Assembly: GCA_977017575.1 (NCBI GenBank)
Contig: CDRNVI010000171.1
Span: 1-28,990, forward strand
Source of the DNA: Paramoeba atlantica
Lineage: Eukaryota > Protista > Discosea
Reading direction: 5' to 3'
DNA length: 28,990 nucleotides
The notes under the pieces were generated by a model. It worked only from the letters and a program-made list of their open reading frames with translations. It searched no databases and was not told where the DNA came from. Positions 1-28,990 of this stretch are shown here, in pieces. The position numbers were made by a program, and so were the translations under genes. Every line of letters starts with the position of its first letter. Within the stretch, counting starts at the first letter, position 1.

Positions 1-2068
1 GGGGAAGAATGGAGGCGAAATGACAATTGGTTGACAGGCGACCCTTGTAGAAATTATTGGGATGGTGTTAAGTGTTGGTTTTTGGATCATGTTTTAGAAC
101 TGTGAGTGGCTAATCTCTTCTCTTCTTTTTCCTTCTCTATTCTATCCTTTATCTTCATCAGTCTCTATTTTGTTTTCTCTTTCTTTCCATCTCTTTTCGT
201 TTTCTAACATGCAAATCTAATAGAAAACTCGCTGTCAATGGGTTAACTGGGACAATTCCCACCGAAATTTCCAATCTCACCTGGCTAGTAACATTGTATT
301 TCTTCTCTCTTTCTCTCTTCTCTCTTTATTTCCCATTTCATTCACTTAATTTGATGAGCAGTGAATCCTTTCTCTTTTTCTTTCTTCTCCTTTTCCCCTC
401 TCTTCTTTGTTCTTTTTCTTTCTCAAATTCCTTTTTAGGGATATTCCATTCAATCCAATATCTGGTACAATTCCTTCTGAAATTGGACAACTCTCTTATT
501 TATCATCTTTGTATGTTGTTCTTTTCTCTCTTCTCTCTTCTCCTTTTTTAATTTTAATCTTGAAGGTTTCTGTATGACAACTCCCTAGAAGGATCAATCC
601 CAACAGAAATCGGAAAACTCACCGAATTAGAAGTAGGGTTCTCTCTCTTTTTTTTCCTCCAAGAAGATTATTTTATTATTTTTATTTTAAAAAACATTTT
701 GTTAAGAAACATTTTGTTAAGAAACATTTTGTTTTTGTTTTAGAAAAGTGATGAGAGGGAAAAAGAGAAGAAAACTAAGCATTTATTTCTTTTGAAAATC
801 TCAGGGTATTGAAAAATAATCGTTTGACAGGAACAATACCGACTGAACTTGGTTTCCTTACAAGTTTGACTAGATTGTATGTTTTTTTCTCTTTTCTCTT
901 TCTCTTTGTAGTCTCTTTTCTTTTTTTTTTTTCCTCCAAAAAGTTTTTTTTTTAAAAAAAAGGTTTTGTTAACAGTTTGTTTTTGTCTTGGAAAAGTGAT
1001 GAGAGGAAAAAGACAAGAGGAAAAAGAGAAGAAAACTGACCATTTTTTCAGGGGAATGTCAAACAACAAGATAAGTGGCCCCCTTCCAACTGAACTTGGG
1101 AGACTCTCAAAAGTTACTCAGTTATCTTTTGGAGAAAACTCACTAACTGGGCAAATTCCAACTGAAATTTGGGGAATGGAAAATCTTCAACATTTGTATT
1201 TATTTTCTTTTTTTTTGACAATATGATTTGTCTGTGATTTCTGAAATTTTTTTCTTTAGAAACTTAAGCCAAAACAATTTAACTGGAACAATTCCAGGAA
1301 AAAATATTCCTTCTTTTATTTATTTGTATGCCAACTCTTTTCTTTCTCTCATACTGTGTTCCATTTTCTTTCTTCCCATTCTCATGAAATTGTTTTTAGA
1401 GATTTAAGTTCTAATACACTGAGTGGAACAATTCCAACTCAATTGGGTGGCCTTCCTCAATTGACTTTTTTGTTTGTCATTCAATTTTTTCTTTCTTGTG
1501 TTCATAATGTAATTTTTCTTGTTTATTGATTACAAATTCACTAAAACAATGAATAATGAACAGGTATCTCAACAATAACTTATTGACTGGATCCATTGAA
1601 AATGATTTGTGGATTTGTAATCTTTCTGAGTACAACCTGAGAAACAATTATTTCTTTTGCCCACTTCTATCTTGTTGTTCAGAATCTGGGAATGGGATGT
1701 GTACAGGAGATGATCCAATTTGTACTCCACCACCAACTCCCTCTCCCTCTCCAGCTCCTTTTCCAACACCATTTCCATTCCCTACCCCATTTCCATTCCC
1801 ATCTCCATCACCTTCTCCACCATTACCCAGTCCTACTCCATCACCAAATCCAATTCCATCTCCATCTCCACAAATCACATCTCAATCTCCATCCCCACCA
1901 ATCCCATCTCCATCTTCATTTTCAATTCCATCACCAGCTCCATCAAAGATCCCATTTTTTTTAATTTTGGTTTTTGTATTATTTTTAATTCTGGTGCTCA
2001 GTCTTATCTTTTTCTTCTTTTTATCAAAGAAATCTAAAGATGAAACCCCAACATTTGAATTTTCATAA
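1..2068 (+). CDS. LRR receptor-like type I membrane protein (5'-partial): plant-type LRR N-cap, about 10 LRRs, Cys-rich cap, Pro/Ser-rich stalk, one TM helix, short cytoplasmic tail
   Basis: Exons with GT-AG boundaries: 1-101 ([30 protein letters not shown]-cap motif), 224-295, 439-510, 566-637, 805-876 (72 nt each), 1052-1195 (144 nt), 1260-1325 (66 nt), 1400-1471 (72 nt), 1564-2068. All introns are phase 2. The spliced frame is open with LxLxxNxLTGxIPTEIGxL repeats, then a (PSPSP)-rich stalk and the hydrophobic segment [25 protein letters not shown] followed by SKKSK; TAA at 2066-2068. Confidence 0.9.
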
Positions 2069-2339
2069 AGCATAAAAAAAATAAAAATGTCTTTCGACAA
2101 CCAGTCTCCACTTTTTTTTAAAGATCAAATTTTTCTTTTGGTTGACTTTTTTACACCACACAATGGAAAATTCAATTCCAATTGGGACCCCATCAACAAT
2201 TTGGAAAAGGGAGACTCTCCCCATGATCCAACAACAACAAAAAAAAAAGAATTATTCAACAATGTTTTTAGGTTTCTAAATGAGAGGCATTTTGGGTAGA
2301 TTTGTGTGTTTTCGGCTTTTGGAGAATTATTGTGAATAA

Positions 2340-2865: not shown

Positions 2866-3212
2866 ATTTATTTTTGGTGTCCTCTCTTTTGGTGTCCCTT
2901 TCCCTTTTGCTTTTCTGTTTTTCTTTCTTTCCAGTGTTCCCCTCTTTCACTTCTCTTCTCTTCTTCTCTCCTTCCTCTTTCTCTTTCTCTTTCTCTTTCT
3001 TTCCCAAGTTTCCCTCTTTCGCTTCACCTTTATTTATTTCGGTGTCCCTTCTTTTGGTGTCCCTTTACCTTTTGTTTTTCTGTTTTCTTTCTTTCTTTCT
3101 GGTTTGGAAGAATGGTTTCAATTTTTTGTTGGTTGTTCATTGGGAGAGGTGGTTCTCGTGGTGGGTGTACTCGTTTTTTGATTGGGGGGAGTCATCAAAG
3201 TGGTTTGTTAGT
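2866..3212 (+). repeat. Pyrimidine-rich upstream/5' segment of the GPCR gene with an internal direct repeat; 2936-3212 is duplicated in inverted orientation at 7502-7745
   Basis: The block (t)atttatt(t/c)ggtgtcc....ttttggtgtcccttt(c/a)ccttttg occurs at ~2866-2910 and ~3031-3075. 2936-3212 matches the reverse complement of 7502-7745 apart from a ~47-nt deletion in the latter. Confidence 0.85.
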
Positions 3213-5273
3213 TGGTTGTTTGTTTTTTGTTTTGTTTTTGTTTTCGGTTTTTTGTGGGTCCGTTTCTTGTGATGATAGTTTTTGTGTTGAATATTCTCTT
3301 CAAAATGAATGTACCTCTGTTTTGGGAACTGTATCAATTGAACAAGGCGAACAAGAAGACTTTTTCAATGAGAATGTTTCACTAACTATTTCTGATGTTC
3401 GAATGAGACCTGAGAAATGTCGAAAACCATTTTTATTGTATTATTGTCAGCTGATGTTTGGAGGATTTGTTTGTCAATCTTCTTCGAGAGAAGAACAACT
3501 ATGTTTCGAGCAAGAGACTTGTCGTCAAGTTGCAGAAGCTTGTAGTGATGAATTTTCACTTGATTGTCTTCCTTCTTCTTTCCCAACATCAACGCCAACA
3601 ACATCTTTTCGACAATCAATTTGTAACGAGATTTGTGATGTTGAAGTTGAAGAACAAATCGAACAAGCAAAAGAAAACATAATTCGTGTGGAAACTTGTT
3701 TAGATGGTTCAAAAGAACAAATTGAATGTTGTAATGATCCATTTATATTTGATGATAATGATGAATGTGTTATTGAATGTCCTCAATATTTGGTTGGACA
3801 ATCACTTGAAAAATGGGTCGGACTCACCGATTTTGTTTTCAATTGGCTGTTTTTGATTGCTTTGATTGCAGCCATTCCTCCTCTCTATTTTATGGCAAAT
3901 ATAAGGTTTTTTTATCTTTCTTTTTGAAAAAAAGAATGAGTTAAAATTATCAAGTTGTTATTGAAAGAAAATATTCAAACATGCAAAATGACAATGAAGA
4001 ATAACAAAAATAGGTATCCAAACAATGTTCTTCTTTTTGCATATGGGGCATACATTCTTGCTGGAATGGTTTATATGAGTGCAGTTTTTGATGGTTTCTT
4101 TTTCTTCAGTCGGATTCTTGAGTATCATTTGTTGTTGAGAGAAAATTATTATTTTTTAATACAAAAATATTGAAACGTTTTTTTCACAGGAGTCTCCAAA
4201 TTTATTTGTAATGGAGAGAAAAGTTATTGGGATGGATTGAATCATTTTGCACATTTACCTCGTAATCTTATTCTCTATTCTATTTGGGTCTTTTTCACAA
4301 GCTTGTCTTATATCCATTGGACTCTTTTTGCTTTTAACTTGTTTTGCCATTCAGTCAGGTTTTTTTCCTCCTCTCTTGTCTCTTCTCTTTTTGTCTCTTT
4401 AACTCAAGAGATTTGCTCTTAGACCTTTCACATCATCCTTTGACAAATTTATTGATCAACCTACACACCCATTAATTATCATTTTAATGGAAGGACTTTG
4501 TTTCGGGATTTCTGGAGGACTAGGTATTCCTCTTTTTGATTTGAGTCATTTTTAAATTCTTTTTTTTTTTTTTCATTTCTTTAATCTTTTAATTCACCAA
4601 AACATTTTTTTTTGTCAATTTCTCTTTGGATTAAAATAGGTTTAACTTGTCTCTTTTATGGGCTTCAAAACAAAGTAATCTTTTTCCCTTCTCCAATCTC
4701 TGCATTTCCGGCCTCTTCAAATGCTTTTTTGTCAAGAATTGTGTTGGTAGTTTTGTTGACGATTTTGGGAGGTGTTGCTGCCTTCTTTATGCTTCTTTCG
4801 ATTATTTTTTTCATGAAGCGAGGAAGACATATTTTTTATTTTCAATGGTTTGGAGTTATTATTCAAAAGAAAGTTAAGTCAAATTTATATTTAGAATTTT
4901 TAATTTAACAACTCCTCTCCCCTAAAAAAACAGGAGATCCATCTTTGTTGGATGTTTTTGGTGTGTTTGGACAATGTGGACCTTATTCATCTATTACCTT
5001 GGAATCCATCAAACTTCTCCATCCAGAACAGAAGTATTCAAATATCCAAATTGTGTAGCATCTCACCCACGAACCAATTCCCCTCCATGTCAAAGAGAAC
5101 ACCCCCATTTTACTATGTTAGTCTTAACCAGCATTTTCACAACTTCCTTCTTTTTCATCCTTCTTTTCATCACTTTTTGGACGAATTCTTTGGTGATTCG
5201 TTGGTGGAAAGAGTTAATCCGGTCAAAAAGAATTTTGAGATCGACAAACCAAAAGTATGAAGTTGTTAATTGA
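3112..5273 (+). CDS. Frizzled/Smoothened-like GPCR (Cys-rich extracellular domain plus 7TM), similar in architecture to Dictyostelium Fsl/Fsc receptors
   Basis: Exons 3112-3905, 4014-4093, 4190-4358, 4423-4523, 4640-4847, 4934-5273 have compatible phases (2,1,2,1,2) and an open spliced frame. Features: signal-like hydrophobic stretch; Cys-rich domain (C..YYCQLMF..C....LC....C.QV..AC); linker CCNDPFI....CVIECP; TM1-RYPNN; Cys pair in the last extracellular loop (YPNC...PPC); TM7 followed by TNSLVIRWWKEL, which is positioned like the Frizzled KTxxxW motif. Confidence 0.8.
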
Positions 5274-7255: not shown

Positions 7256-7501
7256 AAGAAGATATTTTGTTGAGATTTGAAGAAATAATATTTTTTTTCA
7301 AATCAGAAAGAGGAGTCAGAATTTGAGTGCACTCTGTACATTCATAAATTGACAATTTATTTTTCGTTTTTTTTCGATTTTGTGGCATTTTCTCTCATGT
7401 CGAGTGAGCTTTCCTTTGTTTTTGGGGACAGAATAACACCCCAGCACACATCCAAAACTCATCACAATATTCACACCCCCATCCAATCAACAAATAACCA
7501 T

Positions 7502-7745
7502 ACTAACAAACCACTTTGATGACTCCCCCCAATCAAAAAACGAGCACATCCACCACGAGAACCACCTCTCCCAATGAACAACCAACAAAAATTGAAAAAC
7601 AAAAGGGAAAGGGACACCAAAAGAGAGGACACCGAAATAAATAAAGGTGAAGCGAAAGAGGGGAACTTGGGAAAGAAAGAGAAAGAGAAAGAGAAAGAGG
7701 AAGGAGAGAAGAAGAGAAGAAGAGAAGAGAAGTGAAAGAGGGAAC
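7502..7745 (-). repeat. Inverted partial copy of the GPCR gene's upstream region and N-terminal coding sequence, lacking the ATG
   Basis: The reverse complement reproduces 2936-3212, including ...FCWLFIGRGGSRGGC(A/T)RFLIGGSHQSGLLV, but deletes ~47 nt containing the ATG at 3112. Confidence 0.85.
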
Positions 7746-7866
7746 TTGGGAAAGAAAGAGAAAGAGAATCAGGTAGAGTTCTTGTTTTGGGGTGGGTGGG
7801 TCTCAAGGGACAGTCCTTTTTGAAATCTTAATCATCCTCTTTTTTTTGGAACAACAAAAGTTTCAG

Positions 7867-10800
7867 ATGAATCAAGATTTGCAACAACCGCAACAACAAC
7901 CACAACAACAACTACAACCACAACCACAACAACAAAAAAAGGGACCTGAAATGAGATTGAGAAATGAAGAAGAAGAAGAAGAAAAGAAGAGGATAGAAGA
8001 AGAAGTGAGGGTGGAGTTAAAAAAAAAGTCATTTGAGGTTGGGGAAGAACTTTCTTCTTTCTTTTCTTTTCTCAACTTTCGAATAATATTTTGAACTCAT
8101 TTTTATATTGAAAGAAATTACTTCAAACTGCTTTGAGTCATAGTCGTTGCAAAAGAATTGAGATACTTTTTGAATTGATGGAAAAACACAATCACCCCAA
8201 GGTTTTTTCTTTTTAATCAGAATCATTAATTATTAATCATTATTATTTGTTTGCATCAAAACTATTTTTTCAACAATTTTGAATCAAAGTTATCACAATT
8301 TTGACTCTTTTTTCCCAAAAAAAAACAAAACTATAAATAATATTTTAGTTTGGAATAACACCTCTCCATCTTGCTTCTTTCAATGGAAATGAAGAAAATG
8401 TTGAATTGTTGTTGCAAGAAGGAGCAAAGGCGAATTCTATTGAAGAGGTTTTTCTTGAATTGAATTTGAGTTCTTTTGAACTCACAGAATATCATTCTTT
8501 TATTCTGTTATTTGTTGTTGGACAAAATATTTTGATCAAAATAAATATTCTCATCTTTTTATTTTAATGTTATTATTAGCTTTGTGGAAAAAGCCCTCTT
8601 CACTTTGCTGCAGAGAATAATAAGAAACAAATTGTTCACATTTTATTGGAAAAAGGAAAACCAAATGTTGATCTTCCAGATCAGGTTATTTTTAATTTGT
8701 TTTTTTGATTTGTTGAGTTGGCAGTGTTTTGGTATTCTTTTTGTTATTTTGATTTTTTTGATTTGTTGAGTTGGCAGGGTTTAGAATTCTTTTTTTTCTT
8801 TATTTTCTCATTTTTCTTTTCTTTTTTTATGTAAAGGATGGAAGAACTCCTCTTTATATTGCTGCTGAAAAAGGACATGAACAAATTGTTCAAATTTTAT
8901 TGGAAAAAGGAAAACCAAATGTTGATCTTACTGAAGAGGTTTTCTTTTTGTAGGAGAATTTTTTCTTTTCTTTTCTTTAATTTTTTAATTTCAAGGATGG
9001 AGCAACTCCTCTTTTTATTGCTGCTCAAGAAAAACATGAACAAATTGTTCAAATTTTATTGGAAAAGGGGGGAGCAAATGTTGATCTTGCAATAGAGGTT
9101 CTTCTTCTTATATTTATTTTTTGAATTTGTTGTATTATTTAGTTTCTTTTTCTTTTTCTTTTTCTTTTCACTTTTGACTTTTTTTTTTATCTAAAGGGCG
9201 GAATAACTCCTCTTTTGATTGCTGCTCAAAATGGAGATGAACAAATTGTTCAACTTTTATTGGAAAAAGGAAAACCAAATGTTGATCTTGCAAATCAGGT
9301 TATTTTGTTAATGATTTCTCTTTCTTTTTCTTTCTTTTCTTTTCTGTTTTTGATTTTAAACTGAAATGAAAGAGAGTATTTTGTAACTTGAAAAACAATC
9401 AAACATTCAAAAAAATTGAAATTTATTTGTCATGACTTGTAAAACAAAATCCCATTTTCATTTTTTTTTTGAATGTTTTTCTCTTTTTAAATCAAAGACT
9501 GGAGAAACTCCTCTTTATATTGCTGCTCAAAAAGGATGTGAACAAATTGTTCAAATTTTATTGGAAAAAGGAAAACCAAATGTTGATCTTGCTGAAGAGG
9601 TTCTTTTTAGTAATTACTTTAATTTGTGAGTTGGAGATTTTTCTTTTTTTTTTTTTATTCTCTCAATTTTCGATGTTAATGTAAAGGATGGAAGGACTCC
9701 TCTTTATATTGCTGCTCAAAAAGGATATGACCAAATTGTTCAACTTTTATTGGAAAAAGGAAAACCAAATGTTGATTTTACATCTCAGGTTATTTTGATT
9801 AGTTCTTATTATGATATTTTGAATTGGAAAAATATTCTTTTTCTCTTTTTTTTTTCACTTTCTCATTATTTCTATTTTTTTTTTTTCAATTTCTCGTTTT
9901 TCTCTTTTTTTTTAATGTAATAAAGAATGGAAGAACTCCTCTTTTTATTGCTGCTGAAAAAGGACATGAACAAATTGTTCAACTTTTATTGGAAAAAGGA
10001 GCCAATGTTGATCTTGCAAATCAGGTTCTTCTTATTTTTGATTTTGAAAAATGAATAATGGACTGAATAAAAAACAATTATTTATCTCTCATTCTTTCTC
10101 TCTTTTTCTTTCAAGCTTGGGCAAAATCCACTTCATCGTGCTGTAGTTGGTGGAAATGAACAAATTGTTGACCTTTTATTGGTGAAAGGAAAAGCAGATG
10201 CCAATTCTCAAACAACAGTTCTTTTCTTTTCTTTCCTTTTTTTTTGATCTTGAAGAAATAAATTTATTTATTTTTTATTTTTTTATTTTTCCATTTTTTT
10301 TTTCATCAAAGATTTTATTTTTTAAGAAGGATTTTTTCCCAAAATTAAAGAATAAAAGATTTTTTTTTTATTTTTCTTTATTCCTTTTCTCCTTTTTAAA
10401 TTTTTAATTAAAGTATGGAAGTACTCCTCTTTGTTTTGCTGCTCAAAATGGACATGAACAAATTGTTCAACTTTTGTTGGAAAAAGGAGGAATATATGTT
10501 GACCTTGCAAAAGAGGTTTCTTTTTTCTTTTTTTTTTAGGGCCAGATATTCTTTTTTTTTTTTCTTTTCTCATTTTTTCTATTTTTTTTTATGTAAAGGA
10601 TGGAAGAACTCCTCTTTATCTTGCTGCTGAAAAAGGACATGAACAAATTGTTCAAATTTTATTGGAAAAAGGAAAAGCAAATGTTAATCTTCCAGGAGAG
10701 GTTCTTTTTAGTTCATTTTTGACTTGTTGGATTGGTTTAGTTTTTCCTTTCATTCCATTTTCTCATTTTCTCATTTCCTCTTTTTGATTTGAAAAAGGGT

Positions 10801-13800
10801 GGAGAAACCCCTCTTTATGTTGCTGTCAAAGAAGGATATGGACAAATTGTTCAACTTTTATTGGAAAAAGGTGGAGCAAATATTGATTCTCAAAATTTGG
10901 TTTTTTCCTCTTTTTTTTTATTAAAGAGTTTTTTTTTTGTGGATGAACATATTAAAAACACTCAAAGACTTTTTTATTTTTTCATTTTCTATTTTTTTAT
11001 GACCAAAGGGTGGTGTCACTCCTCTTTTGATTGCTGCTCACAATGGACATGAACAAATTGTTCAAATTTTATTGGAAAAAGGAAAACCAAATATTGATCT
11101 TGCAAATCAGGTTATTTTGTTGATTGTTTCTTTTTCTTTTTCTTTTTCTTTTTTTTTTTTCACTTTCTCATTTTTCTATTTTTTTTTCATGTAAAAAGGC
11201 TGGAGTAACTCCTCTTTATATTGCTGCTCAAGAAGGACATGAAAACATTGTTCAAATTTTATTGGAAAAAGGAAACCCAAATGTGAATTTTCAAAGAAAG
11301 GTTTTCTTTTTTCTTAACATTTGAAAAGAGAGTATTGTTCCTTGTGATGAAATATTATTTGATATTTCTTTGTTGTAATTGATATTTTTTTTCTCACTTT
11401 CTTTTTCTCATTTGTTTGTAATTTTTTTCTCTAAAGTTTGCATTCACTCCCCTTTATGTTGCTATTGAAAATGGCCATGAACAAATTGTTCAACTTTTAT
11501 TGAATGGAGGAGCAAATGTTCATCTTGCAGAATCAGTTCTCCTTCTTTTTACTTTATTTTGTAATTTTAAAAATAGATAGAACCCAAAAACAAAAACAAA
11601 ATTCTTTTTCATTCTTTCCCTCTTTTTCTTTCAGAAATTTGGACAAACTCCACTTGATACTGCTTCTTTTAATGGACATGCACAAATTGTTGAAATGTTA
11701 TTGAACAGAGGAGCAAATGCCAATTCTCGAAGAAAGGTTGAATTATTAAATTATATTTTGACATATTTTGTCATGATATTTTTTTTTTTAAAGGATGGAG
11801 CAACTCCACTCTATATTGCTGCTCAAAAAGGATATGAACAAATTGTTCAAATTTTATTGGAAAAGGGAAGAGCAAATGCTGATCTTGCTGATCAGGTTCT
11901 CTCTTATTTTTATTTTGAATTTGTTGAAAGCTTTGATTTTTTTTTATCTTTTTCTTTCTTTCTTATCTTTTGTTCCCAAGGGATATGGACAAACCCCACT
12001 TGATACTGCTGCTTTTAGAGGACATCATCAAATTGTTCAACTTTTATTAGAAAAAGGAAAAGCAAATGTTAATTCTCAAAGAAAGGTTTTTTTTCTATTT
12101 TTCTTTTTCTTTTTTTCTTATTTTTGATAGAATGTTTTTTGTTTTTCTAATTGAAAAACCAAACACTCAAAATATTTGAAATTTATTTAACATAACTTCA
12201 AAAAAAGTTCCTTTCTCATTTTTCTTTTTTTATATCAAAAGGATGGAACAACTCCTCTTTATGTTGCTGCTGAAAAAGGGCATGAACAAATTGTTCAAAT
12301 TTTATTAGAAAAAGGAAAACCAAATGTTGATCTTGCAGATCAGGTTATTTTATTTTATTTGTTACAACTTTATTAGAAATTTTTTTTTTCATTTTTCTAT
12401 TTTTTAATCAAAAAGGATGGAACAACTCCTCTTTACATTGCTGCTGAAAAAGGATATGAACAAATTGTTCAACTTTTATTGGAAAAAGGAGCAAATGTTG
12501 ATCTTGCTGAAAAGGTTCTTTTTATGATATTTTAATTTGTTGATTTAATTTGATTTCTTTTTCTATTTTTCATGTTCTCACTTTTTTTTTTTTTAAAAGG
12601 AGGGAAGGACTCCTCTTTATCTTGCTGCTGAAAAAGGATATGAACAAATTGTTCAACTCTTGTTGGAAAAAGGAAGAATACATGTTGACCTTGCAAATAA
12701 GGTAATTTTGTTGATTGCTTTCTTTTTTTTTTTTTTTTTTCATTTTCGATTTTTTTTTTAATGTCAAGGATGGAACAACTCCTCTTTATATTGCTGCTCA
12801 AAAAGGGCATGAACTAATTGTTCAACTTTTATTAGAAAAAAGAAAAGCAAATATTAATTCTCAAAGAGAGGTTCTTTTTTCTTTTTCTTTTTTCTTTTTT
12901 GAAAAATATTTTTGAATTTGAAAGTGTTTAAACATTCAAAATATCTGAAATTTATTTGATACAACTTTTTTGGAAAATACCTTTTTCATTATTTTTAATT
13001 TCAAGGATGGAGCAACTCCCCTTTTTATTGCTGCTCAAGAAGGACATGAACAAGTTGTTCAACTTTTATTGGAAAAAGGAAAACCAAGTGTTGATCTTGC
13101 AGATCAGGTTAATTTGTTTATTTGATTCTTTTTCTTTCCTTTTTCTTTTTCACTTTTTCATTTTTCTCCTTTTTTTATTCATGTAAAGGATGGAGTAACT
13201 CCTCTTTTTATTGCTGCTCAAGAAGGACATGAACAAGTTGTTCAAATTTTATTGAAAAATGGAGCAAATGTTGATCTTCCAGCTCAGGTTCTTTTTCTTG
13301 TTTTTAAATTTTAAATGTGTTGATTTGTTTTTTTTCTTTTTTACTTATTTTTTTCCCTCATTTTCATTTTTCTCCTTTTTGATTATTTAAAAGGATGGAA
13401 TAACTCCTCTTTCTATTGCTACTGACATTGGACATGAACAAATTGTTCAAATTTTATTGGAAAAAGGAGGAGCAAATGCTGATCTTGCAGAGAAGGTTAT
13501 TTGTTTATTATTATTTTATTTTTATTTTTATTTTTATTGATTCAATTTTCTATTTTTTTTTCAGTTTCTCATTTTTCTTTTTTTTTTGATTAAAAGGATG
13601 GAGCAACTCCTCTTTTTATTGCTGCTGAAAATGGATATGAACAAATTGTGAAAATTTTATTGGAAAAAGGAGGAGCAAATGCTAATCTTTCAAGATTGGT
13701 TTATTTTTTTATTCTTTTTTTTGAATTATATTTTCTTATTTTCTCTTTGTTAATAAAAGGATGGAGAAACCCCTCTTTCTGTTGCTGCTCAAAAAGGATA

Positions 13801-13873
13801 TGAACAAATTGTTCAAATTTTATTGGAAAAAGAAAAATCAAATATTGATCTTGCAATTCTTCTTTTAAAATAA
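7867..13873 (+). CDS. Large ankyrin-repeat protein: polyQ/Glu-rich N-terminus plus 27 ankyrin repeats, each on its own phase-0 exon
   Basis: Exons: 7867-8037, 8115-8201, then ANK exons 8349-8447, 8580-8684, 8837-8938, 8996-9097, 9197-9298, 9498-9599, 9687-9788, 9926-10024, 10116-10217, 10414-10515, 10599-10700, 10798-10899, 11009-11110, 11199-11300, 11437-11535, 11635-11736, 11794-11895, 11981-12085, 12242-12343, 12416-12514, 12600-12701, 12769-12870, 13006-13107, 13189-13287, 13394-13495, 13597-13698, 13760-13873 (TAA). Internal ANK exons are 99/102/105 nt, AG/GT-flanked and stop-free. Consensus: DGxTPLxxAAxxGHEQIVQ(I/L)LLEKGxxNV(D/N)xxxx. Confidence 0.92.
7882..7935 (+). repeat. Coding (CAA/CCA)n microsatellite encoding a Q/P tract
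   Basis: caacaaccgcaacaacaaccacaacaacaactacaaccacaaccacaacaacaa, in frame within ankyrin exon 1. Confidence 0.85.
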
Positions 13874-16746
13874 TATCTTAAATTATTTAATTTTTTTTTT
13901 ACTTTTAAAGCCTGTTATTTTTTATTTAATATTTAATATTTTCTTCATTGTTTTTCCCCTTTTTTCTGTTTCCTTTTTTTTTCTCTTTGATCTCTTCTTC
14001 TCTGCTATTAGACTTGAGTTATGTCAAATAAAAGAAAGTAACAAACGGAGAAATGGTGCAGAGACGAAACTGAGAAATAAACTCGGAAATCAAATCAGGG
14101 AAAAACAAGAGTGAGAGCTTTATTTTGACTTCGGTACTTAGCACTAACTATTCACAGAATGCAGAGGGCAAAGGACTAAGTCACCAAGTTCGCCAAAAGG
14201 AAGAATGGAGGTTTGGGAACTGGATCAGCAATTCGTCGAAGGGGAGAAATGGATCAAAAGAGTGATGTCATCATTGGAACAAAAAGACCACAAGCAAGCC
14301 TTAGGCTATTGCCAATTGACAGAAAGGCTGTGAGGAATCCTACTCCTTTCCCTTCTCTAACTCCTTATACTTAGAGTAATCCATCACCTGCATCTTCTTT
14401 TCCTAAAAAAGAAGAAGGTGGTTGTAAAGAGAGGCCCATATTTCTGTCAAAAATACAGAAAAGTGGATTTCAGTCATACAAAAGCCTCCCATGAGAATTG
14501 AGTGGTGAACATGTTTTCCCTCTTAAGGTTTTTTTTTTTGAATTGAGTTTGAAAATGTTTCACTCATACGAACACCACAGAGAGGATCTGGCTGATGTGT
14601 TAAAAGGGGTGGCTTTGAGTGCTCAGGAAAATTTTCTCTCTTTGCAGAGGAATACCTCCAGTTCTGACAAGCCCCACCTGCCAGGGAACCTGAGTGCACA
14701 TGGGAGATTTTCTGCAAAGAAAGCTCTACACCACATCCAATTTTTGAGAAAATGTGAATTTTAAAAATAAAGTTTAGGTCCATTTTTTTTGGTAGCAATC
14801 CAGTATTTAAAGGTGTTGTAAGCAACTTTTTGATGGTTATTAAGATGGTAATTTTATGTTTTTTTTCAGAGATCAGATTTACAAACCCAGCACCCATAAT
14901 TTAAAATCTATTTTCATTTTTCAAAGACTGGATTTCCAAATGTAACCCAACTTGGTTAGCTCAAAACTTGGTGTATTTTCCCATTCAAATCCTAAATAAA
15001 AGAGAAAGCCCAATATCTTTTTTGTCATGATGAAGAACTGTCCTACAAGCAATTGAGAGCCAAAATTCTTCAATCAAACAAAAATCTTTGTTGAAAGAGT
15101 CTTCGAGAAGGAGTTCAGGTTTGAACAGAGTGAGTGGTTTGTTTAGACATTTGAGGGAAAAACAAAAAACAAAAAGAAAAAAAAAGAAAAAAAAACAAAG
15201 AATTTGAACTAAATTGTTTTGGCTGTATTTTTCTAATAAAAAAAAAGAAAAAAAGTAATCTGAAAAGAATCCAAGATGAAAATTGTTAATTTTTTTGCTT
15301 TTTTTTCTTTCAAATTTTTGATTCTTTTTTCAAAATGCTTGCTAGATTCAATCTCAAAAGAAAAAAATGAATTCAATCACAAAAAAAGAAAAGAAGGAGA
15401 TTAAAAATGGAATTCTTGCTCTGTCAACCAATTCCCCATGATTCTTTCTGTTCTTCTTCATGGATATTATCACCAAAAAACCCTTTTCCTCTCTCAATGT
15501 TATTGTTTCCTCCTGTTCATTTTTCAAAGCCATTTAAGGATAATTATTCTACTCTTTCTCTCCTTCACCTTTATTATTTGATTGTTTTTGTTTTTTGACT
15601 GTATGAAAACTTGTAAAAACAAATAAGAGTTTAGTGTCTTGGAAAGTGCTTGAAGAGAAGGTTGTGTTTCTATTTGATCATCTTGTTTTTCTTTTTTTTT
15701 CTTTTTTTTCTTTTGTTTTTTTCTCCTTTTTTTCTTTCTTTTTTTTTCTTCCTTTTTATTCTTCCTTTTTATTCTCTCTTTTTTTCTCCTTTTTTTTCCT
15801 TCCTCTTTTTTCTTCTACCTCTTTTTTCTTTTTTTTTTTTTTTATTATTATTATCATTTTTAAAAATATCTTTTTTGAATTCACACACAATCCAGGTTTT
15901 TAAAATTGTTGGAAGAATGAGTTGAAAGAAAGCAAGTGGTTCACATGGACTCTTAAAACCAATGGATTATTCAAAACTGTGACAACCACATTATTTTAAT
16001 AAGAAAACCAGGAAAAAGCACTATTGTTGAGAACTTATTTTGAAACCAAACCAACAACAGTTTTTCTCCAAAATCCATTGTTGGCTTTGGAGCAGAAAGT
16101 TTTAGAAATGGAATTTCAAACTTTGGTGATTTCAAGTGTATTAACTCCCCAAACAAAGGATCTAAAACTCACTGAAATATCATCACATCATTTGGATTTT
16201 TTAGTAACCCATATCATTCATTATCATCTTCACAAACTGTGTTTGTTTCAAATCATCAGATTTCTTGAGGTTTTGAAAGTTTATTTATTAAATTTTAAGA
16301 AATTATAATCTTTTAAAATACACAAAAAAAAAATGAATTAACCTTTTTGAACAGCTTTCTTCACAACTTGCTTTCCAATGGGCAAACAATAAACAAGTTC
16401 TTGAATTAGTTTTTTTGAAATGCTGGACTTGAACTTTTCAAAAGTTCAAGTTTAGTGTTTCAAAAGGTTTATCCTTTTTAATTTGTATTCCTTCATCTTT
16501 ATTACAAAGAATCTTTGAAAAAATAAACCACTTTAAAGTTTGTAATCTCTTCTGTTTTCCTTTTGATTTGAAATGTAAAAACTTTCCCACACAGGGGTGG
16601 GCTCAAGCTGCACTTGCAGTTAGGGCAATTAGTGGGTTTGAATCAGACTACTGGAGAGGTTTCAACACCCTGAAAGTTAGCTGATATCATTGCCCACCTC
16701 AGCTCACAAACAGCCTCAATTTGACTTTCTTCCATTGTCCAAACTT

Positions 16747-19685: not shown

Positions 19686-22428
19686 ATGGCAAACAATCAA
19701 AAAAGTTACTCTTCTCTGTTTTTTATCTCTTTGTTATCTATCAGAAAAAAATCAAAAAAAAAAAACAAGGATCAGAAACTCTTCTTTGATGTTGTTGGGA
19801 GTGAAAATGAAGAAGATGTCAAAGTTTTTCTTCTTGAAAACAAAGAATGTCAACTTGATGTTGACTTTAAATGTATAAACAAAGTTTTTTATTTTCTTTT
19901 TCTTTTTCTTTTTCTTTTTTCTTTTGTTGTTTTTAAGTTTTTGTTTTCTTTTTGTTAAAAGAATGGAATGACCACTCTTCACCTAGCTACTGAGAAAGGT
20001 TTTGAAAAAATTGTGAAAATTTTTGTTGAATATGAATCCAATTTTGATCTTCAAGAGCAAGTTTTTGATTTTTTTTTTGTTTTTTTCTTTTGTTTCTTTT
20101 ATTTTTTAAATTTTGTTGTTATTTGATAAAATATTGGTTATTTTGATATAATTAGAGAAATGGTTTGAGTAATGATTTTTTTTTGTTTTTTTTTTTAAAA
20201 AACTTATTTTTGTTTAAAAAATCAATACACTCCTTTTCACTTGGTGGTAGGAAAAGGTTTTAAAAAAATTGTGAAAATTTTTATTAAACATAGAATCAAC
20301 ACTGATCTTCAAGATCAAGTTTTGATTTCTCTTTTATATTTTTTTGTTTCCTCTCATTTTGTTTTATTTTGATAAATTATTAGGTTGTTTTGATATGATG
20401 TGTGTTGTGGTGGTTTTATTTTGTTCTTTTTTTTTGTTATTGATAAACTATTGGTTCTTTTGATATGATAGGAAAAAATGGTTGTATTGAGTGATAATTT
20501 TATTTTGTTTCTTTTTTTAAAACTTTTTTTTTGTTGAAGTATCAATACTCCACTCTTCACTTTGTTGCTTCCAAATTTAGAGCCAACAAAGAAATTGTGA
20601 AAATTCTGATTGAAAGTGGAGCTAATATTGATCTTTAAGATCATATTTTGATTTTTTTTTTCTTTTTTCTTTTTTTTTCTTTCCATTTTTTAATTTTGTT
20701 GTTGTTGATAAATTATTGATTTTTTTGAAAAATAATGAGTAAATGGTTAAGGTGATAATTTTATTTTGTTTTTTTTTTAAATTTTTTTTTTTTGTTCAAG
20801 TTTGAATAGGCTGTTTTGCACAAAGTTGTTTCTGAAGATTTTCAAAAAATTGTAAAAATTCTTATTAAATATGGATTCAACCTCAATATTCAAAACAGAG
20901 TTTTTTTTTTTTTTTTTTTTTTTTATTTGTGTTTTTTTCATTTTTTTATTTATTTGTTGATAAATTATTGGTTCTTCTGATATAATAGAAGCTGTGGTGA
21001 TTTGTTTTGTTATTTTTTTTTAATTTTTCTTTTTGTTAAAGAAAAGAAGAACTACTTTTCACCTTGGAGCCAACAAAGAAATTATAAAAATTCTAATTGA
21101 ACAATATTGATCTTCAAGATGAGGTTTTGATTTTCTTTTTTCTTTTTTTTTCTTTTGGTTTTTTTAAAAATTTCTTTTTTTAAAACTTCTTTTTGTTAAA
21201 GAGAAAAAAACCCCACTTCATTAGATTGCTTTTAAAGATTTTGAATAAATTGTGAAAATTCTTCTTGAACATGGAGCTGATGTTAATTTTCAAATCAAAG
21301 TTTTGATTTTTCTTTTTTCTTTTTATTGAAGTGTGATAAGTTATTTTATTCTTTTTTAAACCTTTTTTTGTTCAGTCTGGATGGATCACTCTTTACTATG
21401 CTGTTGAGAAAGGTTTTTATGAAATTGTGAACATTTTTATTGAACATAGATCTAAGATTAATTTTCAAGATCAAGTTTTGATTTTCTTTTTTTTTTTTTT
21501 TTATTTTTTTATTTTTTTATTTTTTCTTTGATTTTCATTTTTTTTTTTTCAAATTTTATCTTTTTTTTGATTTATTGAAAAAATTTCAGTTTAAAATTGT
21601 GTAATGATTTTTTTTTCTTATATTGTGGTTCATTGTATTTGTTGTTTCATGTTGTTGTGAATGGTAGTGTTGTATGTGATGTTTATTTTGTTTTGTTTTT
21701 TTCTTTAATTCTTTTTTTTTTTTGTATTTGTTCTTTTTTAAAATAAATTGTTTCTTTTTTTAATTTTTTTTTATTAAAAAGTATAAAAAGACTGCTTTTC
21801 ATTCTGCTGCTTCTACAGGTTCTAAAGAAATTGTAAAAATTTTTATTGAACATAAATTTACCCTTGATTTTCAAATCATAGTTTTTATTTTTTTTTTTTC
21901 TTTTTTATTATTTTTTGTTTCTCTCTTTCTATTTGTTTTTTCTTTTTTTTTTAACTAATTTTTTCTATTGTAACAATTTGTGTGAGATTTGTTTTTTTTT
22001 TTTTTTAAAATTTCATTTTGTTAAAAAGTAGATGGACTCTTCTTCACAATGCTACTTTCCATGGTTTTGAAGAAATTGTGAAAATTTTTGTTAAATATAG
22101 AGCCAATATTTATCTTCAAAACAAAGTTTTGATTTTTCTTTTTTTAATTTTCTTTTTCATTTGTTGAATTTTATTTGAGTTTTTTTTGTAGTTTTTTTTG
22201 AACTTTTTTATTTTTCTTTTTTGTTAGGATGGTAAAACAATCTTTGATATTATGGAAAATCAGACTAGGAGGCAAAGAATTGTTGAACTGATCAATGAAT
22301 TTCAGGAAAGGGTTTTGTTTTGTTTTTAGTTTTTTTTTTTTTTTTTTTTTCTTCCATTTTTATCTTCTTTTTTTTATTTTTTTGTTGTAAAGGAAAAATA
22401 TCAAACCAACTCAATGAAAAATACATAA
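19686..22428 (+). pseudogene. Second one-repeat-per-exon ankyrin gene (a different repeat subfamily), inactivated
   Basis: Exon relics: ~19686-19883, 19962-20060, 20220-20318 (acceptor AG>AA), 20540-20644 (TAA at 20636, donor GT>AT), 20801-20899 (TAG at 20807), 21042-21123 (internal deletion/frameshift), 21202-21299 (TAG 21222, TAA 21246), 21376-21474, 21782-21880, 22027-22125 (acceptor lost), 22228-22311, 22393-22428. Consensus resembles NGWTxLHxAxxKGFEEIVKILIEHGANxDLQDQ. Confidence 0.85.
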
Positions 22429-23631: not shown

Positions 23632-25249
23632 CCCTATACATTGCAAAAAACTAACGAATTTTTTCAAAAGATTTATGAATCGAATCGATTAAGGTGACGA
23701 TTCTATCCGAAAGAGACGAAAAACGTCGAAACATAAGGTGTGCTAAAAAAGAAACTTTTTGTTTTTCTTTGATTTTCTCAATTCTTTCTTTTGATTGTAT
23801 GTGGAAAAGTGAAATGATTGATCCGGTGGTGTTGTTTTTAATAGTTTGTGAATAAAGAAAAAAAAAAAGAATAACAAACTAAAACATTCACTTGAAATAT
23901 GGAATAAAAAAGTTCATTGGTAAATCAAACAATCTATCATGTATCTTTCCAAACCTTTCAACTCTTCTTTTCTTTCAATTTCTTTCTTTTCTCTTTCTGT
24001 TTTTCTTTTTTTTTCTCACCCGCCACTTTCTTTTCCGAAAAAGAAAAAAAAAATCCAATTCCTAATCAAATGTTGCCACATCAGCCATTTTCTTTTTCTT
24101 TTTTTGGTTTTTTTTTTGGTTTTTTGTTTCGAACAGTTTTTTTTTTCTTTTTTGTTTGTGAGAAAGAAAGAAAAAAAGAAAAAGAAAGAGAAAGAGAAAG
24201 ATTCAACAAAAAAGAGAAAAAAACAAAAAAAAACAAAGAAAAAGGATTGTATGACCAAAATTGATTGAAAAGATCCAAATGCAAACCAAAAATAAGATTA
24301 AAAAAGAAAAAAAGAAAAAGAATTGAATTTGTATTGGTCCTATCTTGATGGAAGCTTGAACAACTAAGAAAAAACAAGAACATTTGAATTCTTTTTCACT
24401 TTGTCAAATTTCAAGAAAAAAAATCGCACCCAAAATAAAAATCGGTTTTTCAACAAAAAAGTTTTTCTTTTTTGTTTTTTGTTTTTGTTTGATTTTTGTG
24501 TTTGGTTTTTGTTTTTTGAAAAATGAGAAAAATAGACTTTTAGAAATCAAGAGATTTTTGGTTTTTCAATGTATCACTTTTATATTAAGAAAGAGAAACG
24601 AAAAACCAATCTATTTTTCTCAAAGTGAGAAAGATAAAAGAATTCACAAAATTTATCCGGTGATCCAATTCTTTGAGGTTTTCTTTCTTTTCTTTTTTCC
24701 TCTTCTTTTTCTTGTTTCTTTTTTTCTTTTTTTCTTTTTCTTTTTTGTTTCTTTTTTCTTCTTTTTCCTTCATCTCTTTTTCTTTTTTACTTTTTTTCAC
24801 ACAAAATTGTTTTTTTTTTTCTTTTTCCTTTTTTCTTTTTCTCTTTTTTCTTTTTCTCTTTTTTCTTTTTCTCTTTTTTCTTTTTCTCTTTTTTTTTTTC
24901 TTTTTTGAAAAGATTTAGAAAAATGAAAAACTAATTCTTTTTATTCTCAGAATGAACAAAATAAAAAAAATCAAAAGGGATTCATTTTCTTTTGTGTTGA
25001 GTGGGAACAGGATTTCTTTTTTTTCAATGGTTTTTTGATTTCTTTTTTGATTTCTTTTTTTCTTTTTCTCTCATTTTCTTCTTTTTTTTTTCTTTTTGTT
25101 TTTTTTTATTTCTTTTTTATTTCAGGGTTTTGAAAGCTTAAAAATATGAAAGTTTGTTTTTTGTTGTTTCTTTTAAGTTTTAATTTTTTTGTTGATATTC
25201 GGAATTTTTTTTATTTTATTTTTTTTTATTTTAATTGTTTTTTTTCTTT

Positions 25250-27095
25250 AGAGAGTGTTTTTTATCATTGAAAATGACATCATCTTATTCCCTGTGATTT
25301 ACTGTATCCAAAGAATCCTATTTTTCTCTCAGATAAAGCACAATGTGATGTGATGGGTTAGAGGTTCAGTTTCTTTTTTCCAACATTTTTTTAAACAATA
25401 TTTAAATAATTAAAGTTTTAATGTTTTTTCCTTCAGAAACTGTTCTTTATCATTGAAAATAATATCGTCTTATTCCTTGTGATTTACTGTATCCAAAGAA
25501 GCCTATTTTTCTCAGATAAAGCACCTGATGTGATATGAGGGGTTCAGTTTCTTTTTTCCGGTATTTTTTTAAACAATAACTAATTACTTTTTTTTATTGT
25601 TTTTTCCTTCAGAAACTATTCTTTATTATTGAAAATGATATCGTCTTATTCCTTGTGATTTACTGTATCCAAAGAAGCCTATTTTTCTCAAATAAAACAC
25701 TTGATGTGATGTGAGGTTCAGTTTTTTTTTTTTGATATTTTTTTAAACAATAACTAATTACTTTTTTTTATTGTTTTTTCCTTCAGAAACTGTTCTTTAT
25801 CATTGAAAATACTATCATCTTATTCCCTGTGATTTACTCTCTCCAAAGAAGCCTATTTTTCTCAAATAAGCACCTGATGTGATGTGAGGGGTTCAGTTTC
25901 TTTTTTTCAGTATTTTTTTAAATAGTAACTAATTACTTTTTTTTATTATTTTTTCCTTCAGAAACTGTTCTTTATCATTGAAAATGATATCGTCTTATTC
26001 CCTGTGATTTACTGTATCCAAAGAAGCCTATTTTTCTCAGATAAAGCACTTGATGTGATGTGAGGGGTTTAGTTTCTTTTTTTCAATATTTTTTTAAACA
26101 ATAACTAATTACTTTTTTTTATTGTTTTTTCCTTCAGAAACTGTTCTTTATTATTGAAAATACTATCGTCTTATTCCCTGTGATTTACTCTCTCCAAAGA
26201 AGCCTATTTTTCTCAGATAAGCACCTGATGTGATGTGAGGGGTTCAGTTTCTTTTTTTCGGTATTTTTTTAAATAGTAACTAATTACTTTTTTTTATTGT
26301 TTTTTTCTTCAGAGAGTGTTTTTTATCATTGAAAATTACATCGTCTTATTCCTTATGATTTACTGTATCCAAAGAATCCTATTTTTCTCTCAGATAAAAC
26401 ACAATGTGATGTGATGTGAGGGGTTCAGTTTCTTTTTTCTGATATTTTTTTAAACAATATTTAAATAATTAAAGTTTTAATGTTTTTTTCTTTCAGAGAG
26501 TGTTCTTTATCATTGAAAATAACATTGTCTTATTCCTTGTGATTTACTGTATCCAAAGAAGTTTATTTTTCTCTCAGATAAGCACCTGATGTGATGTGAG
26601 GGGTTCAATTTCTTTTTTTCTGACATTTTTTTAAACAATAACTAATTACTTTTTTTTATTGTTTTTTTCTTCAGAGAATGTTCTTTATCATTGAAAATTA
26701 CATTGTCTTATTCCTTGTGATTTACTCTCTCCAAAAAAGTCTATTTTTCTCAGATAAAGCACTTGATGTGATGTGAGAGGTTCAGTTTCTTTTTTCTGGT
26801 ATTTTTTTAAACAGTAACTAATTACTTTTTTTTTATTGTTTTTTTCTTCAGAGAGTGTTTTTTATCATTGAAAATTACATCATCTTATTCCTTGTGATTT
26901 ACTGTATTCAAAGAATCCTATTTTTCTCTCAAATAAAGCACAATGATGTTGTGATGGGTTAGGGATTTAGTTTCTTTTTTCTGATATTTTTTAAAATAAT
27001 ATTTAAATAACTTTTTGTTTTAATGTTTTTTCTTTCAGAGAATATTCTTTATCCATTGAAAAATTGTATCATCTTATTTCTTTTGTGATTTACTC
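25250..27095 (+). repeat. Subtelomeric tandem satellite, ~10.3 copies of a 174-187 bp unit
   Basis: Unit starts (AGA(A/G)A..TGTT.TTTATCATTGAAAAT) at 25250, 25435, 25611, 25785, 25960, 26136, 26311, 26495, 26673, 26850 and 27037 (partial). Conserved core: tcttattcc(c/t)tgtgatttact.t.tccaaagaa.cctatttttctc...tgatgtgatgtgaggggttcagtttc. Confidence 0.95.
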
Positions 27096-28006: not shown

Positions 28007-28060
28007 GTTATTTATGGTTGTTGTTGGTTGTGTTGTTGCCTCTTTATGCTTGGTGAAGGG

Positions 28061-28403
28061 TTTAGGGTTTAGGGTTTAGGGTTTAGGGTTTAGGGTTTAG
28101 GGTTTAGGGTTTAGGGTTTAGGGTTTAGGGTTTAGGGTTTAGGGTTTAGGGTTTAGGGTTTAGGGTTTAGGGTTTAGGGTTTAGGGTTTAGGGTTTAGGG
28201 TTTAGGGTTTAGGGTTTAGGGTTTAGGGTTTAGGGTTTAGGGTTTAGGGTTTAGGGTTTAGGGTTTAGGGTTTAGGGTTTAGGGTTTAGGGTTTAGGGTT
28301 TAGGGTTTAGGGTTTAGGGTTTAGGGTTTAGGGTTTAGGGTTTAGGGTTTAGGGTTTAGGGTTTAGGGTTTAGGGTTTAGGGTTTAGGGTTTAGGGTTTA
28401 GGG
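28061..28403 (+). repeat. Telomeric array (TTTAGGG)49
   Basis: 343 bp of perfect heptamer repeats. The G-rich strand runs 5'->3' away from the AT-rich sequence on the left, as expected for that sequence's right telomere. Confidence 0.97.
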
Positions 28404-28579
28404 TTATCTGTGTGTTCAACTTGTTTCTTAAAATTTTCATTGTCTAAGATAGTAAAAACATTTTGCGCTCTAGCAGCCAAACTCCGACTGAGTGGCTTTA
28501 ACTCTTTTGCCTTTTGGGCTTGCTTATAAACATCATGCGCTAAGTTTGCTACCGCAATAATCAATCCCGGATCTATCAT
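28391..28579 (-). CDS. Truncated ORF resembling the MLKL N-terminal four-helix-bundle domain, in a bacterial-looking context; 3' end runs into the telomeric repeat
   Basis: AGGAG at 28592-28588 lies 8 nt before the ATG at 28579. The protein is MIDPGLIIAVANLAHDVYKQAQKAKELKPLSRSLAARAQNVFTILDNENFKKQVEHTD, followed by NPKP* supplied by the telomere repeat. There are no T-rich introns and base composition is balanced. Confidence 0.55.
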   Translation of the reverse strand: MIDPGLIIAVANLAHDVYKQAQKAKELKPLSRSLAARAQNVFTILDNENFKKQVEHTDNPKP

Positions 28580-28990
28580 CTGCATTTCTCCTTTTGCAAT
28601 AAACAATCTCAATTACTAGCAGCAAAATTATCGCGTCAATTATGCTCCTTAACTGCTAGTATCCATTTTCGCATAGCACGAAAACACCCAAACAACGCGA
28701 CGCATTTCACTCGTCGTTCGCTGTGCTTATTGAGGCTAAATTTTAAGTGACTTAATAGGAATTATTTAAATCATTCAACTTAAGTGGTAACGCTTGATGT
28801 TTTAAATGTAATGGACGAGAGCAATCAGTGCTACCTACGTTCGAGAATATACACCAAGGTATTTGTTCAATGCAATGTTTATTCTGCACTCACTCCCTCA
28901 AATGCACAGCACACCCAATTTTAGCTACACATCCAATGTCATTGCTAGCCTATCTTTATTTTGCACCGTGCCTTATCTTCTCCCACGATT

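Follow-up and report, generated by a model that had tools for sequence, protein, structure and literature searches.

The ankyrin-repeat gene on the forward strand of contig CDRNVI010000171.1 of Paramoeba atlantica (hereafter C171; the window analysed is the whole contig of 28,990 bases, part of an assembly of 45.7 Mb in 248 contigs) carries 27 ankyrin repeats, each on its own symmetric exon, and probably specifies a constitutive, ankyrin-only binding scaffold that evolves by germline birth-and-death, with specificities drifting between paralogs. This reading is carried by an intact gene whose helix framework changes more slowly than its introns, by a close paralog that differs in whole exon-plus-intron units while the unit order is retained, and by a multi-contig family of similar arrays lying near telomeres. 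The original prediction had described the array as a natural cassette library of ankyrin modules, a combinatorial recognition system diversified by alternative splicing, by unequal crossing-over or by both. Much of the anatomy that it set out is recovered here, while the gene does not look like a per-cell combinatorial generator.

The contig is AT-rich and subtelomeric (G+C content 29.6%), and the coordinates of the gene and its parts are given in Table 1. All 28 introns are GT-AG introns in phase 0 with lengths of 57–199 nt, all 56 splice sites are canonical, the donor is GTT at 27 of the 28 introns, and the gene model is supported by an intact colinear paralog on another contig (C151). The 27 repeats foreseen at 8349–13873 were recovered at exactly these coordinates as 27 AG/GT-flanked open segments on the forward strand, each translating to one ankyrin repeat, but the gene itself starts upstream of the array, at 7867, with two non-repeat exons, neither of which has a Pfam match. 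The repeat exons, numbered 1–27 throughout, measure 99 nt (five exons), 102 nt (19), 105 nt (two) and, for the last, 114 nt including TAA; a single exon of 99–105 nt per repeat, as had been claimed, is therefore correct for 26 of them, the last having 111 nt plus the stop. Internal exon lengths are multiples of 3, in agreement with the symmetric phase-0 structure that had been described, and the introns fall at the repeat boundary of the Pfam model, i.e. in the beta-turn, as expected from the claim that they interrupt the hairpin. In-frame duplication is open only to a 0-0 unit, so the symmetry of the 27 exons reflects one duplicated event and does not amount to 27 independent coincidences.

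Assignment of the exons to the ankyrin family is unambiguous in that all eight repeat exons tested exceeded the PF00023 gathering cutoff of 21.1 bits (29.6–38.5 bits), a single frame of 35 alignment columns accommodates all 27 repeats, and the PDB matches of one repeat used as query were Ankyrin-1/2, NOMPC, consensus ankyrins and DARPins (designed ankyrin repeat proteins). A hidden Markov model (HMM) of the family gave 27 matches on the gene, identical to the 27 exons, with no minus-strand or intronic repeat matches within the gene. No signal-peptide-like stretch was found in the N-terminus of the product, nor does the gene code for any domain of the signalling, NTPase (NACHT or NB-ARC) or effector kind, and there is no further coding exon within 7867–13873. 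Three long introns (9299–9497, 12086–12241 and 12871–13005) share an element of about 60 nt (AAACAYTCAAAAWATYTGAAATTTATTT…), which has no matches beyond this gene and its C151 partner and is therefore a relic of unit duplication, not a dispersed or mobile repeat.

The repeats combine a near-constant framework with a small set of variable positions. The helix-2 core had been described as almost invariant even at synonymous sites, and this is confirmed by a 33-nt motif, with codons fixed by position, that recurs in 23 of the 27 repeat exons (23 matches at ≤3 mismatches, nine of them exact, against 0 expected from shuffles). Amino-acid entropy is highest in ten of the 35 alignment columns (1, 3, 7, 8, 11, 12, 14, 32, 33 and 34), where it reaches 1.8–3.2 bits compared with 0–1.3 for most others, and the same ten columns rank highest in 176 family exons of other contigs. 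Identity among repeats is accordingly 0.75–0.82 at framework columns (82% in the 20 homogenised units) and 0.24–0.34 at the ten variable columns, with best nucleotide matches among repeat exons of 0.73–0.94. In DARPin numbering the ten columns correspond, in the same order, to positions 3, 5, 9, 10, 13, 14, 16, 33, 1 and 2, and the library positions reported for the DARPins of Binz et al. (2003) are 2, 3, 5, 13, 14 and 33, all six of which fall among the variable columns. Because those library positions were picked as unconserved surface positions of natural ankyrin repeats, the overlap is unremarkable for any ankyrin repeat, so that the claimed variation at DARPin-like sites is present but says little that is particular to this gene. 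The last three or four residues of each exon had also been listed as variable; columns 32–34 are, but the final residue is not free, the exon-final codon being CAG, GAG or AAG in 22 of 26 repeat exons, which limits it to Q, E or K because the donor needs AG/GT.

The constancy of synonymous sites extends across the family. Among 227 family exons, leucine is encoded by TTA at one column (204/227), by TTG at the next (196/227) and by CTT at two others, and for alanine GCT is used at two columns and GCA at a third. Codon bias was therefore rejected as the explanation, given that the same residue uses different fixed codons by column, and the pattern points to identity by descent or homogenisation, which makes synonymous sites a poor neutral clock between units.

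The closest paralog, at C151:27051–32706 on the minus strand, is intact, has the same first exon and N-cap and carries 25 repeat exons in colinear order. Orthologous introns of the two copies are 90–100% identical (about 96%), and over the 2.1 kb of exons 8–18 (9926–12085) the two loci align colinearly at 94%. Against this background the copies (27 versus 25 units) differ by four whole units. The 230-nt unit with exon 7 is found in the C171 copy only, as is the 174-nt unit formed by exon 19 and its intron, the breakpoint of which falls somewhere in the 21 nt with which exons 19 and 20 both begin; a unit of ~186 nt with an extra exon is found only in C151, between the partners of exons 23 and 24; and the zone of exons 3–5 has been rebuilt between the two copies, exon 3 being 94–96% identical to exon 11 of either. 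These indels are direct evidence for in-register unequal or ectopic recombination, and the part of the original prediction that invoked unequal recombination is borne out in that repeat number has changed by this route between paralogs (not alleles). Exon shuffling, by contrast, found no support: unit order is colinear in C151 at 4% intron divergence and, for units 9–16, in a third paralog on C206 (78–89% identity), and neither the comparison with C151 and C206 nor the family HMM revealed a scrambled exon order or any surplus exons within introns or on the opposite strand. The conserved unit order suggests that the full-length product matters.

The C151 copy was rejected as an allele because its flanks are rearranged, and it is thus a paralogous subtelomeric locus. 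On C151 a frizzled-like gene stands head-to-head with the ankyrin gene, while on C171 it lies 4.5 kb upstream in tandem, and no more than an inverted fragment (110–300 nt) from its 5′ end is left at 7489–7768. This segment is an inverted copy (80–95% identical) of 2913–3224, which spans the 5′ end of the frizzled-like gene (3110–5270) together with its promoter region, and the corresponding segment around which the two genes stand head-to-head on the other contig is C151:32706–33109. Segment 7489–7768 may represent a bidirectional promoter common to both genes and copied together with the ankyrin gene.

Substitution rates were estimated from 20 gapless orthologous exon pairs of C171 and C151. 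Introns differ at 0.042 and synonymous sites at 0.028 per site, compared with nonsynonymous differences of 0.018 per site in the framework and 0.073 in the ten variable columns. The ratio of framework to neutral change is 0.44 (exon-bootstrap confidence interval (CI) 0.21–0.81; Fisher p=4e-4 against the intron rate), and a framework below the neutral rate implies a protein under selection and speaks against a pseudogene. Change at the variable face is fourfold that of the framework (p=4e-7), which is the excess of nonsynonymous change at surface sites that had been anticipated, but relative to neutral change its ratio is only 1.75, with a 95% exon-level bootstrap interval (0.84–3.27) that includes 1, and drops to 1.15 without exons 14 and 16. 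For the six DARPin columns taken a priori, nonsynonymous change is 0.061 per site (Fisher p=0.13 against the intron rate). Site-wise Fisher tests of the variable face against neutral change (p=0.002–0.007) were passed over in favour of resampling by exon, since the differences are concentrated in a small number of exons, the counts per exon being overdispersed (mean 3.45, variance 8.2). In exon 16, four of the eight variable-face changes reproduce codons of the neighbouring exon 18, as would a short conversion tract from that exon; its identity between the copies is 90% with flanking introns at 97–100%, and that of exon 14 is 93% with flanking introns at 94–98%.

Two further yardsticks were considered. 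Intron flanks proved uninformative as a neutral reference within the gene, the mismatch of 0.239 being close to the 0.265 of shuffled sequence in these T-rich introns. The paralog pair on C198 and C218 gave a variable-face ratio of 4.1 (2.0–6.9) with unit pairs 7, 9 and 10 out of register, the units being mispaired because introns are nearly identical between units, and this value was counted as a caveat only and not as a replicate. It exposes a pitfall, as global alignment of arrays with homogenised introns pairs non-orthologous units, which may inflate rate ratios in similar family estimates. At this locus the variable face is under relaxed constraint or perhaps under positive selection, and conversion has remodelled part of it; diversifying selection on it is not proven.

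The gene belongs to a large family. A search of the 45.7-Mb genome with one repeat exon returned at least 182 matches on 13 contigs, a number that is a lower bound, and 13 arrays that were fetched comprise 200 further repeat exons in arrays of 4–28 units; the gene at 7867–13873 is the longest family member seen. The majority of the family consists of shorter genes with a distinct final GFEEIVKILIEH-type repeat, while the gene on C171 and its relatives on C151 and C206 form a long subtype that ends in another kind of tail. Of the 13 contigs, ten, C171 included, have a telomere repeat at the contig end nearest to the array, 2–33 kb away, as read from the fetched contig ends, and on C171 this repeat lies 14.2 kb downstream of the gene, in agreement with the subtelomeric setting proposed for the locus. 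Nine of the ten telomere-capped arrays read only toward the telomere (C151, C225, C146, C201, C176, C198, C218, C191 and C171), and C235 carries arrays in both orientations. Nearer to the telomere on C171 there is another ankyrin gene, now decayed (19962–22125, forward strand), with eight weak matches to repeats of the GFEEIVKILIEH subtype, in-frame stops in several repeats and DNA of ~20% G+C.

From these data we suggest that the array was built by tandem duplication of one symmetric exon-plus-intron cassette and that it would encode an intracellular, ankyrin-only protein of 1,004 residues, consisting of the N-cap, 27 repeats and a short tail. Whole units are gained and lost in the germline by in-register unequal or ectopic recombination, in a birth-and-death process, while short conversion-like patches carry variable-face residues between neighbouring units. 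The helix framework is held by purifying selection and the beta-turn and helix-1 face is free to change, perhaps pushed, and the protein probably serves as a constitutive, elongated, multi-site binding scaffold or adaptor, with specificities that drift from one paralog to another. The data directly show the anatomy of the gene, its family and subtelomeric position, the unit indels, the constraint on the framework and the stable order of units; that the protein binds other proteins, is intracellular and arises by constitutive splicing is what we infer here. Several points weigh against this proposal. That the gene is expressed and constitutively spliced is predicted from the sequence, as is the first exon itself, and the term binding scaffold draws on the general behaviour of ankyrin repeats. 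The neutral baselines are small, at 13 synonymous and 90 intron differences. Finally, the ratio of nonsynonymous to synonymous change (dN/dS) at the variable face between units of the gene is ~3.2 (CI 2.5–4.3), which at face value would argue for stronger diversifying selection than is credited here; it was discounted because synonymous sites are visibly not neutral between units and the intron flanks of different units resemble each other no better than shuffled sequence.

The locus might instead be an ordinary, old ankyrin scaffold, in which the likeness of the repeats reflects duplication history, the variable sites are merely unconstrained and there is no repertoire function. This is consistent with the neutrality-compatible rate of the variable face, particularly after removal of exons 14 and 16, with the unit order conserved in C151 and C206, and with the a-priori DARPin columns, which do not rise above the intron rate. 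Amino-acid identity among the repeats, however, averages 0.60 for the full set of 27 and 0.68 for the 20 homogenised units, while in natural ankyrin arrays identity is usually far below the 60% seen here. Four unit indels within 4% neutral divergence, a large, multi-contig subtelomeric family with arrays of widely differing repeat number, and exon identity that is often below that of the flanking introns (exons 14 and 16) also speak against an ordinary, old scaffold, which we therefore consider unlikely. A decaying or silent subtelomeric pseudogene array without a protein product is suggested by the setting, with its AT-rich subtelomeric DNA, dispersed repeats nearby and a decayed ankyrin gene on the same contig, but 1,004 codons remain free of stops over 29 exons with all splice sites canonical, the C151 copy is likewise open despite 4% neutral divergence, and the framework evolves below the intron rate, so that we give this explanation hardly any credence.

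A combinatorial generator, in which exon skipping or exon choice yields many isoforms, each new join makes a new beta-turn and a few genes supply a repertoire of binders, seems to us distinctly improbable. Any exon skip would stay in frame with 28 phase-0 introns and internal exons in multiples of 3, the intron sits in the beta-turn, designed ankyrin proteins tolerate varied repeat number, and one-repeat exons are reported to be alternatively spliced in brown-algal ROCO genes (PMC11378527). Frame-neutral skipping is, however, an automatic by-product of the origin of the array and so does not indicate that skipping is used, and the middle units are individualised with their order kept in three paralogs, which would fit a functional product made from the complete array. 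Diversity is, moreover, already present in the genome as many germline genes, and no competing selector or docking structures were seen among the introns, the shared ends of which resemble ordinary branch-site and pyrimidine-tract signals. Slightly less probable still is that, through exon skipping or mitotic unequal recombination in the subtelomere, this gene and its sister genes supply distinct ankyrin binders to individual cells or clonal lines; if true, it would represent Dscam-like or variable lymphocyte receptor (VLR)-like diversification in an amoeboid protist, possibly policing intracellular partners. The constitutive scaffold evolving by birth-and-death thus remains the interpretation that we favour.

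In the literature we found no account of Paramoeba ankyrin genes, nor of one-repeat-per-exon ankyrin arrays, and the closest described systems are the fungal NLR sensors with high-internal-conservation (HIC) repeats and the brown-algal genes with one repeat per exon. The gene shares its variable-face logic and recombination mode with the former and its exon architecture with the latter, without the NTPase or GTPase modules of either and without the scrambled order of the brown-algal genes. In fungal NLR sensors with HIC repeats (WD40, ANK and TPR (tetratricopeptide) repeats, e.g. the Podospora HNWD genes; PMC12222747), very similar tandem repeats vary at a few ligand-face positions, unequal crossing-over alters the number of repeats and paralogs swap repeats with one another. 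The ankyrin array resembles them in setting few hypervariable positions against a constant framework and in changing repeat number by unequal recombination, but its repeats are only 60–68% identical at the amino-acid level, compared with >80% within a fungal gene, and it is subtelomeric. The fungal repeats, furthermore, lie in one exon behind a NACHT or NB-ARC domain and an effector domain, whereas here each repeat has its own exon and neither domain is present. The LRR-ROCO (leucine-rich repeat) and NB-ARC-TPR genes of Ectocarpus have one repeat per phase-0 exon (PMC3341825; PMC11378527), like the symmetric one-repeat exons of constant length found here, and likewise form clusters with variable repeat number, for which positive selection on ligand-face residues was proposed. 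They differ in using LRR or TPR repeats attached to ROC-COR or NB-ARC modules, where the present gene has ankyrin repeats and no such module, and in an exon order too scrambled to align domains between paralogs, with exons on the non-coding strand, where three paralogs are colinear here.

DARPins and consensus-designed ankyrin proteins (PDB 6mol, 5leb and 1n0r; PMC8683736) are similar in having an N-cap, near-consensus internal repeats and a C-terminal end, with variation at the beta-turn and helix-1 surface. They are man-made with 2–3 internal repeats, in contrast to a natural array of 27, and in the present gene the repeat usually has 34 residues, since Lys-Pro is inserted behind the glycine of helix 2, and most repeats have Asp at position 3, which is variable in DARPins. 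The best PDB match of a single repeat is an animal ankyrin (4rlv), and the 24-repeat membrane-binding domain of ANK1/2/3 is likewise a long solenoid of about 24–27 repeats with position-specific repeat identities, serving as a multi-site binding platform, a likeness that by analogy may extend to the gene described here. Many repeats of the ANK1 gene are encoded by single 99-nt exons. Animal ankyrins are, however, old and slowly evolving and carry ZU5-UPA, death and regulatory domains, whereas no further domain accompanies the repeats of the present gene, and its family is young and expanding.

Many organisms assemble recognition repertoires from repeat proteins that combine a constant framework and a fast-changing binding face, as in the NLRs of plants and fungi, the VLRs of lampreys and the ROCO genes of brown algae. 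Ankyrin-only cassette genes at the chromosome ends of a protist would extend this theme to a new lineage and to an architecture without a signalling domain, and would offer natural DARPin-like binders whose partners could be isolated. For this gene the outcome is more sobering, in that it is a long, ordered array, stable except for the gain and loss of units, with selection on its face not proven.

Table 1 Coordinates of the ankyrin gene, its exons and units, and the telomere repeat on contig C171.
Feature	Position	Strand	Remarks
Whole ankyrin gene	7867–13873	+	29 exons, 1,004 codons, 28 introns; splice-site and frame check
First exon of the gene, with ATG	7867–8037	+	Low-complexity N-terminus, Q/P-rich, then E/K-rich; 98% identical in C151 copy
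N-cap half-repeat exon	8115–8201	+	Helix pair only; 96.6% identical in C151 copy
ANK exon 1	8349–8447	+	99 nt, divergent type
ANK exon 2	8580–8684	+	105 nt
ANK exons 3–5	8837–8938, 8996–9097, 9197–9298	+	Zone rearranged relative to C151, which has two exons there
ANK exon 6	9498–9599	+	
230-nt unit	9645–9874	+	Exon 7 (9687–9788) with parts of both introns; missing from C151 copy
ANK exons 8–13	9926–10024, 10116–10217, 10414–10515, 10599–10700, 10798–10899, 11009–11110	+	Individualised middle block 9926–12085, first part
ANK exons 14–18	11199–11300, 11437–11535, 11635–11736, 11794–11895, 11981–12085	+	Individualised middle block 9926–12085, remainder
Exon 19 and its intron	12242–12415	+	174-nt unit, here only, not in C151
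ANK exons 20–26	12416–12514, 12600–12701, 12769–12870, 13006–13107, 13189–13287, 13394–13495, 13597–13698	+	Block 12416–13698
ANK exon 27 and C-terminal tail	13760–13873	+	Tail …DLAILLLK, TAA stop
Telomere repeat (TTTAGGG) x 50	28057–28405	+	G-strand toward contig end; same repeat caps other contigs

Several other features were observed on the contig. Two dispersed repeats lie just downstream of the ankyrin gene, one at 14039–14321 with several copies (91–98%) on C209, C138 and C199, and the other at 14729–15100 with >20 copies at 76–94% identity on many contigs. A 176-bp satellite (10.4 copies, 86% identity, also with a 351-bp period) occupies 25229–27094, 1 kb inside the telomere repeat. The 585 bases directly after the telomere repeat (28406–28990) are non-repetitive, have a higher G+C content and occur nowhere else in the assembly, and are likely to be a chimeric read end or foreign DNA. 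At the opposite end of the contig, positions 1–2070 (forward strand) hold a gene that looks like a receptor: leucine-rich repeats of the plant type, each apparently encoded by a short exon of its own, precede a proline-rich stalk and a membrane anchor, so that the contig would carry another gene built with one repeat per exon.

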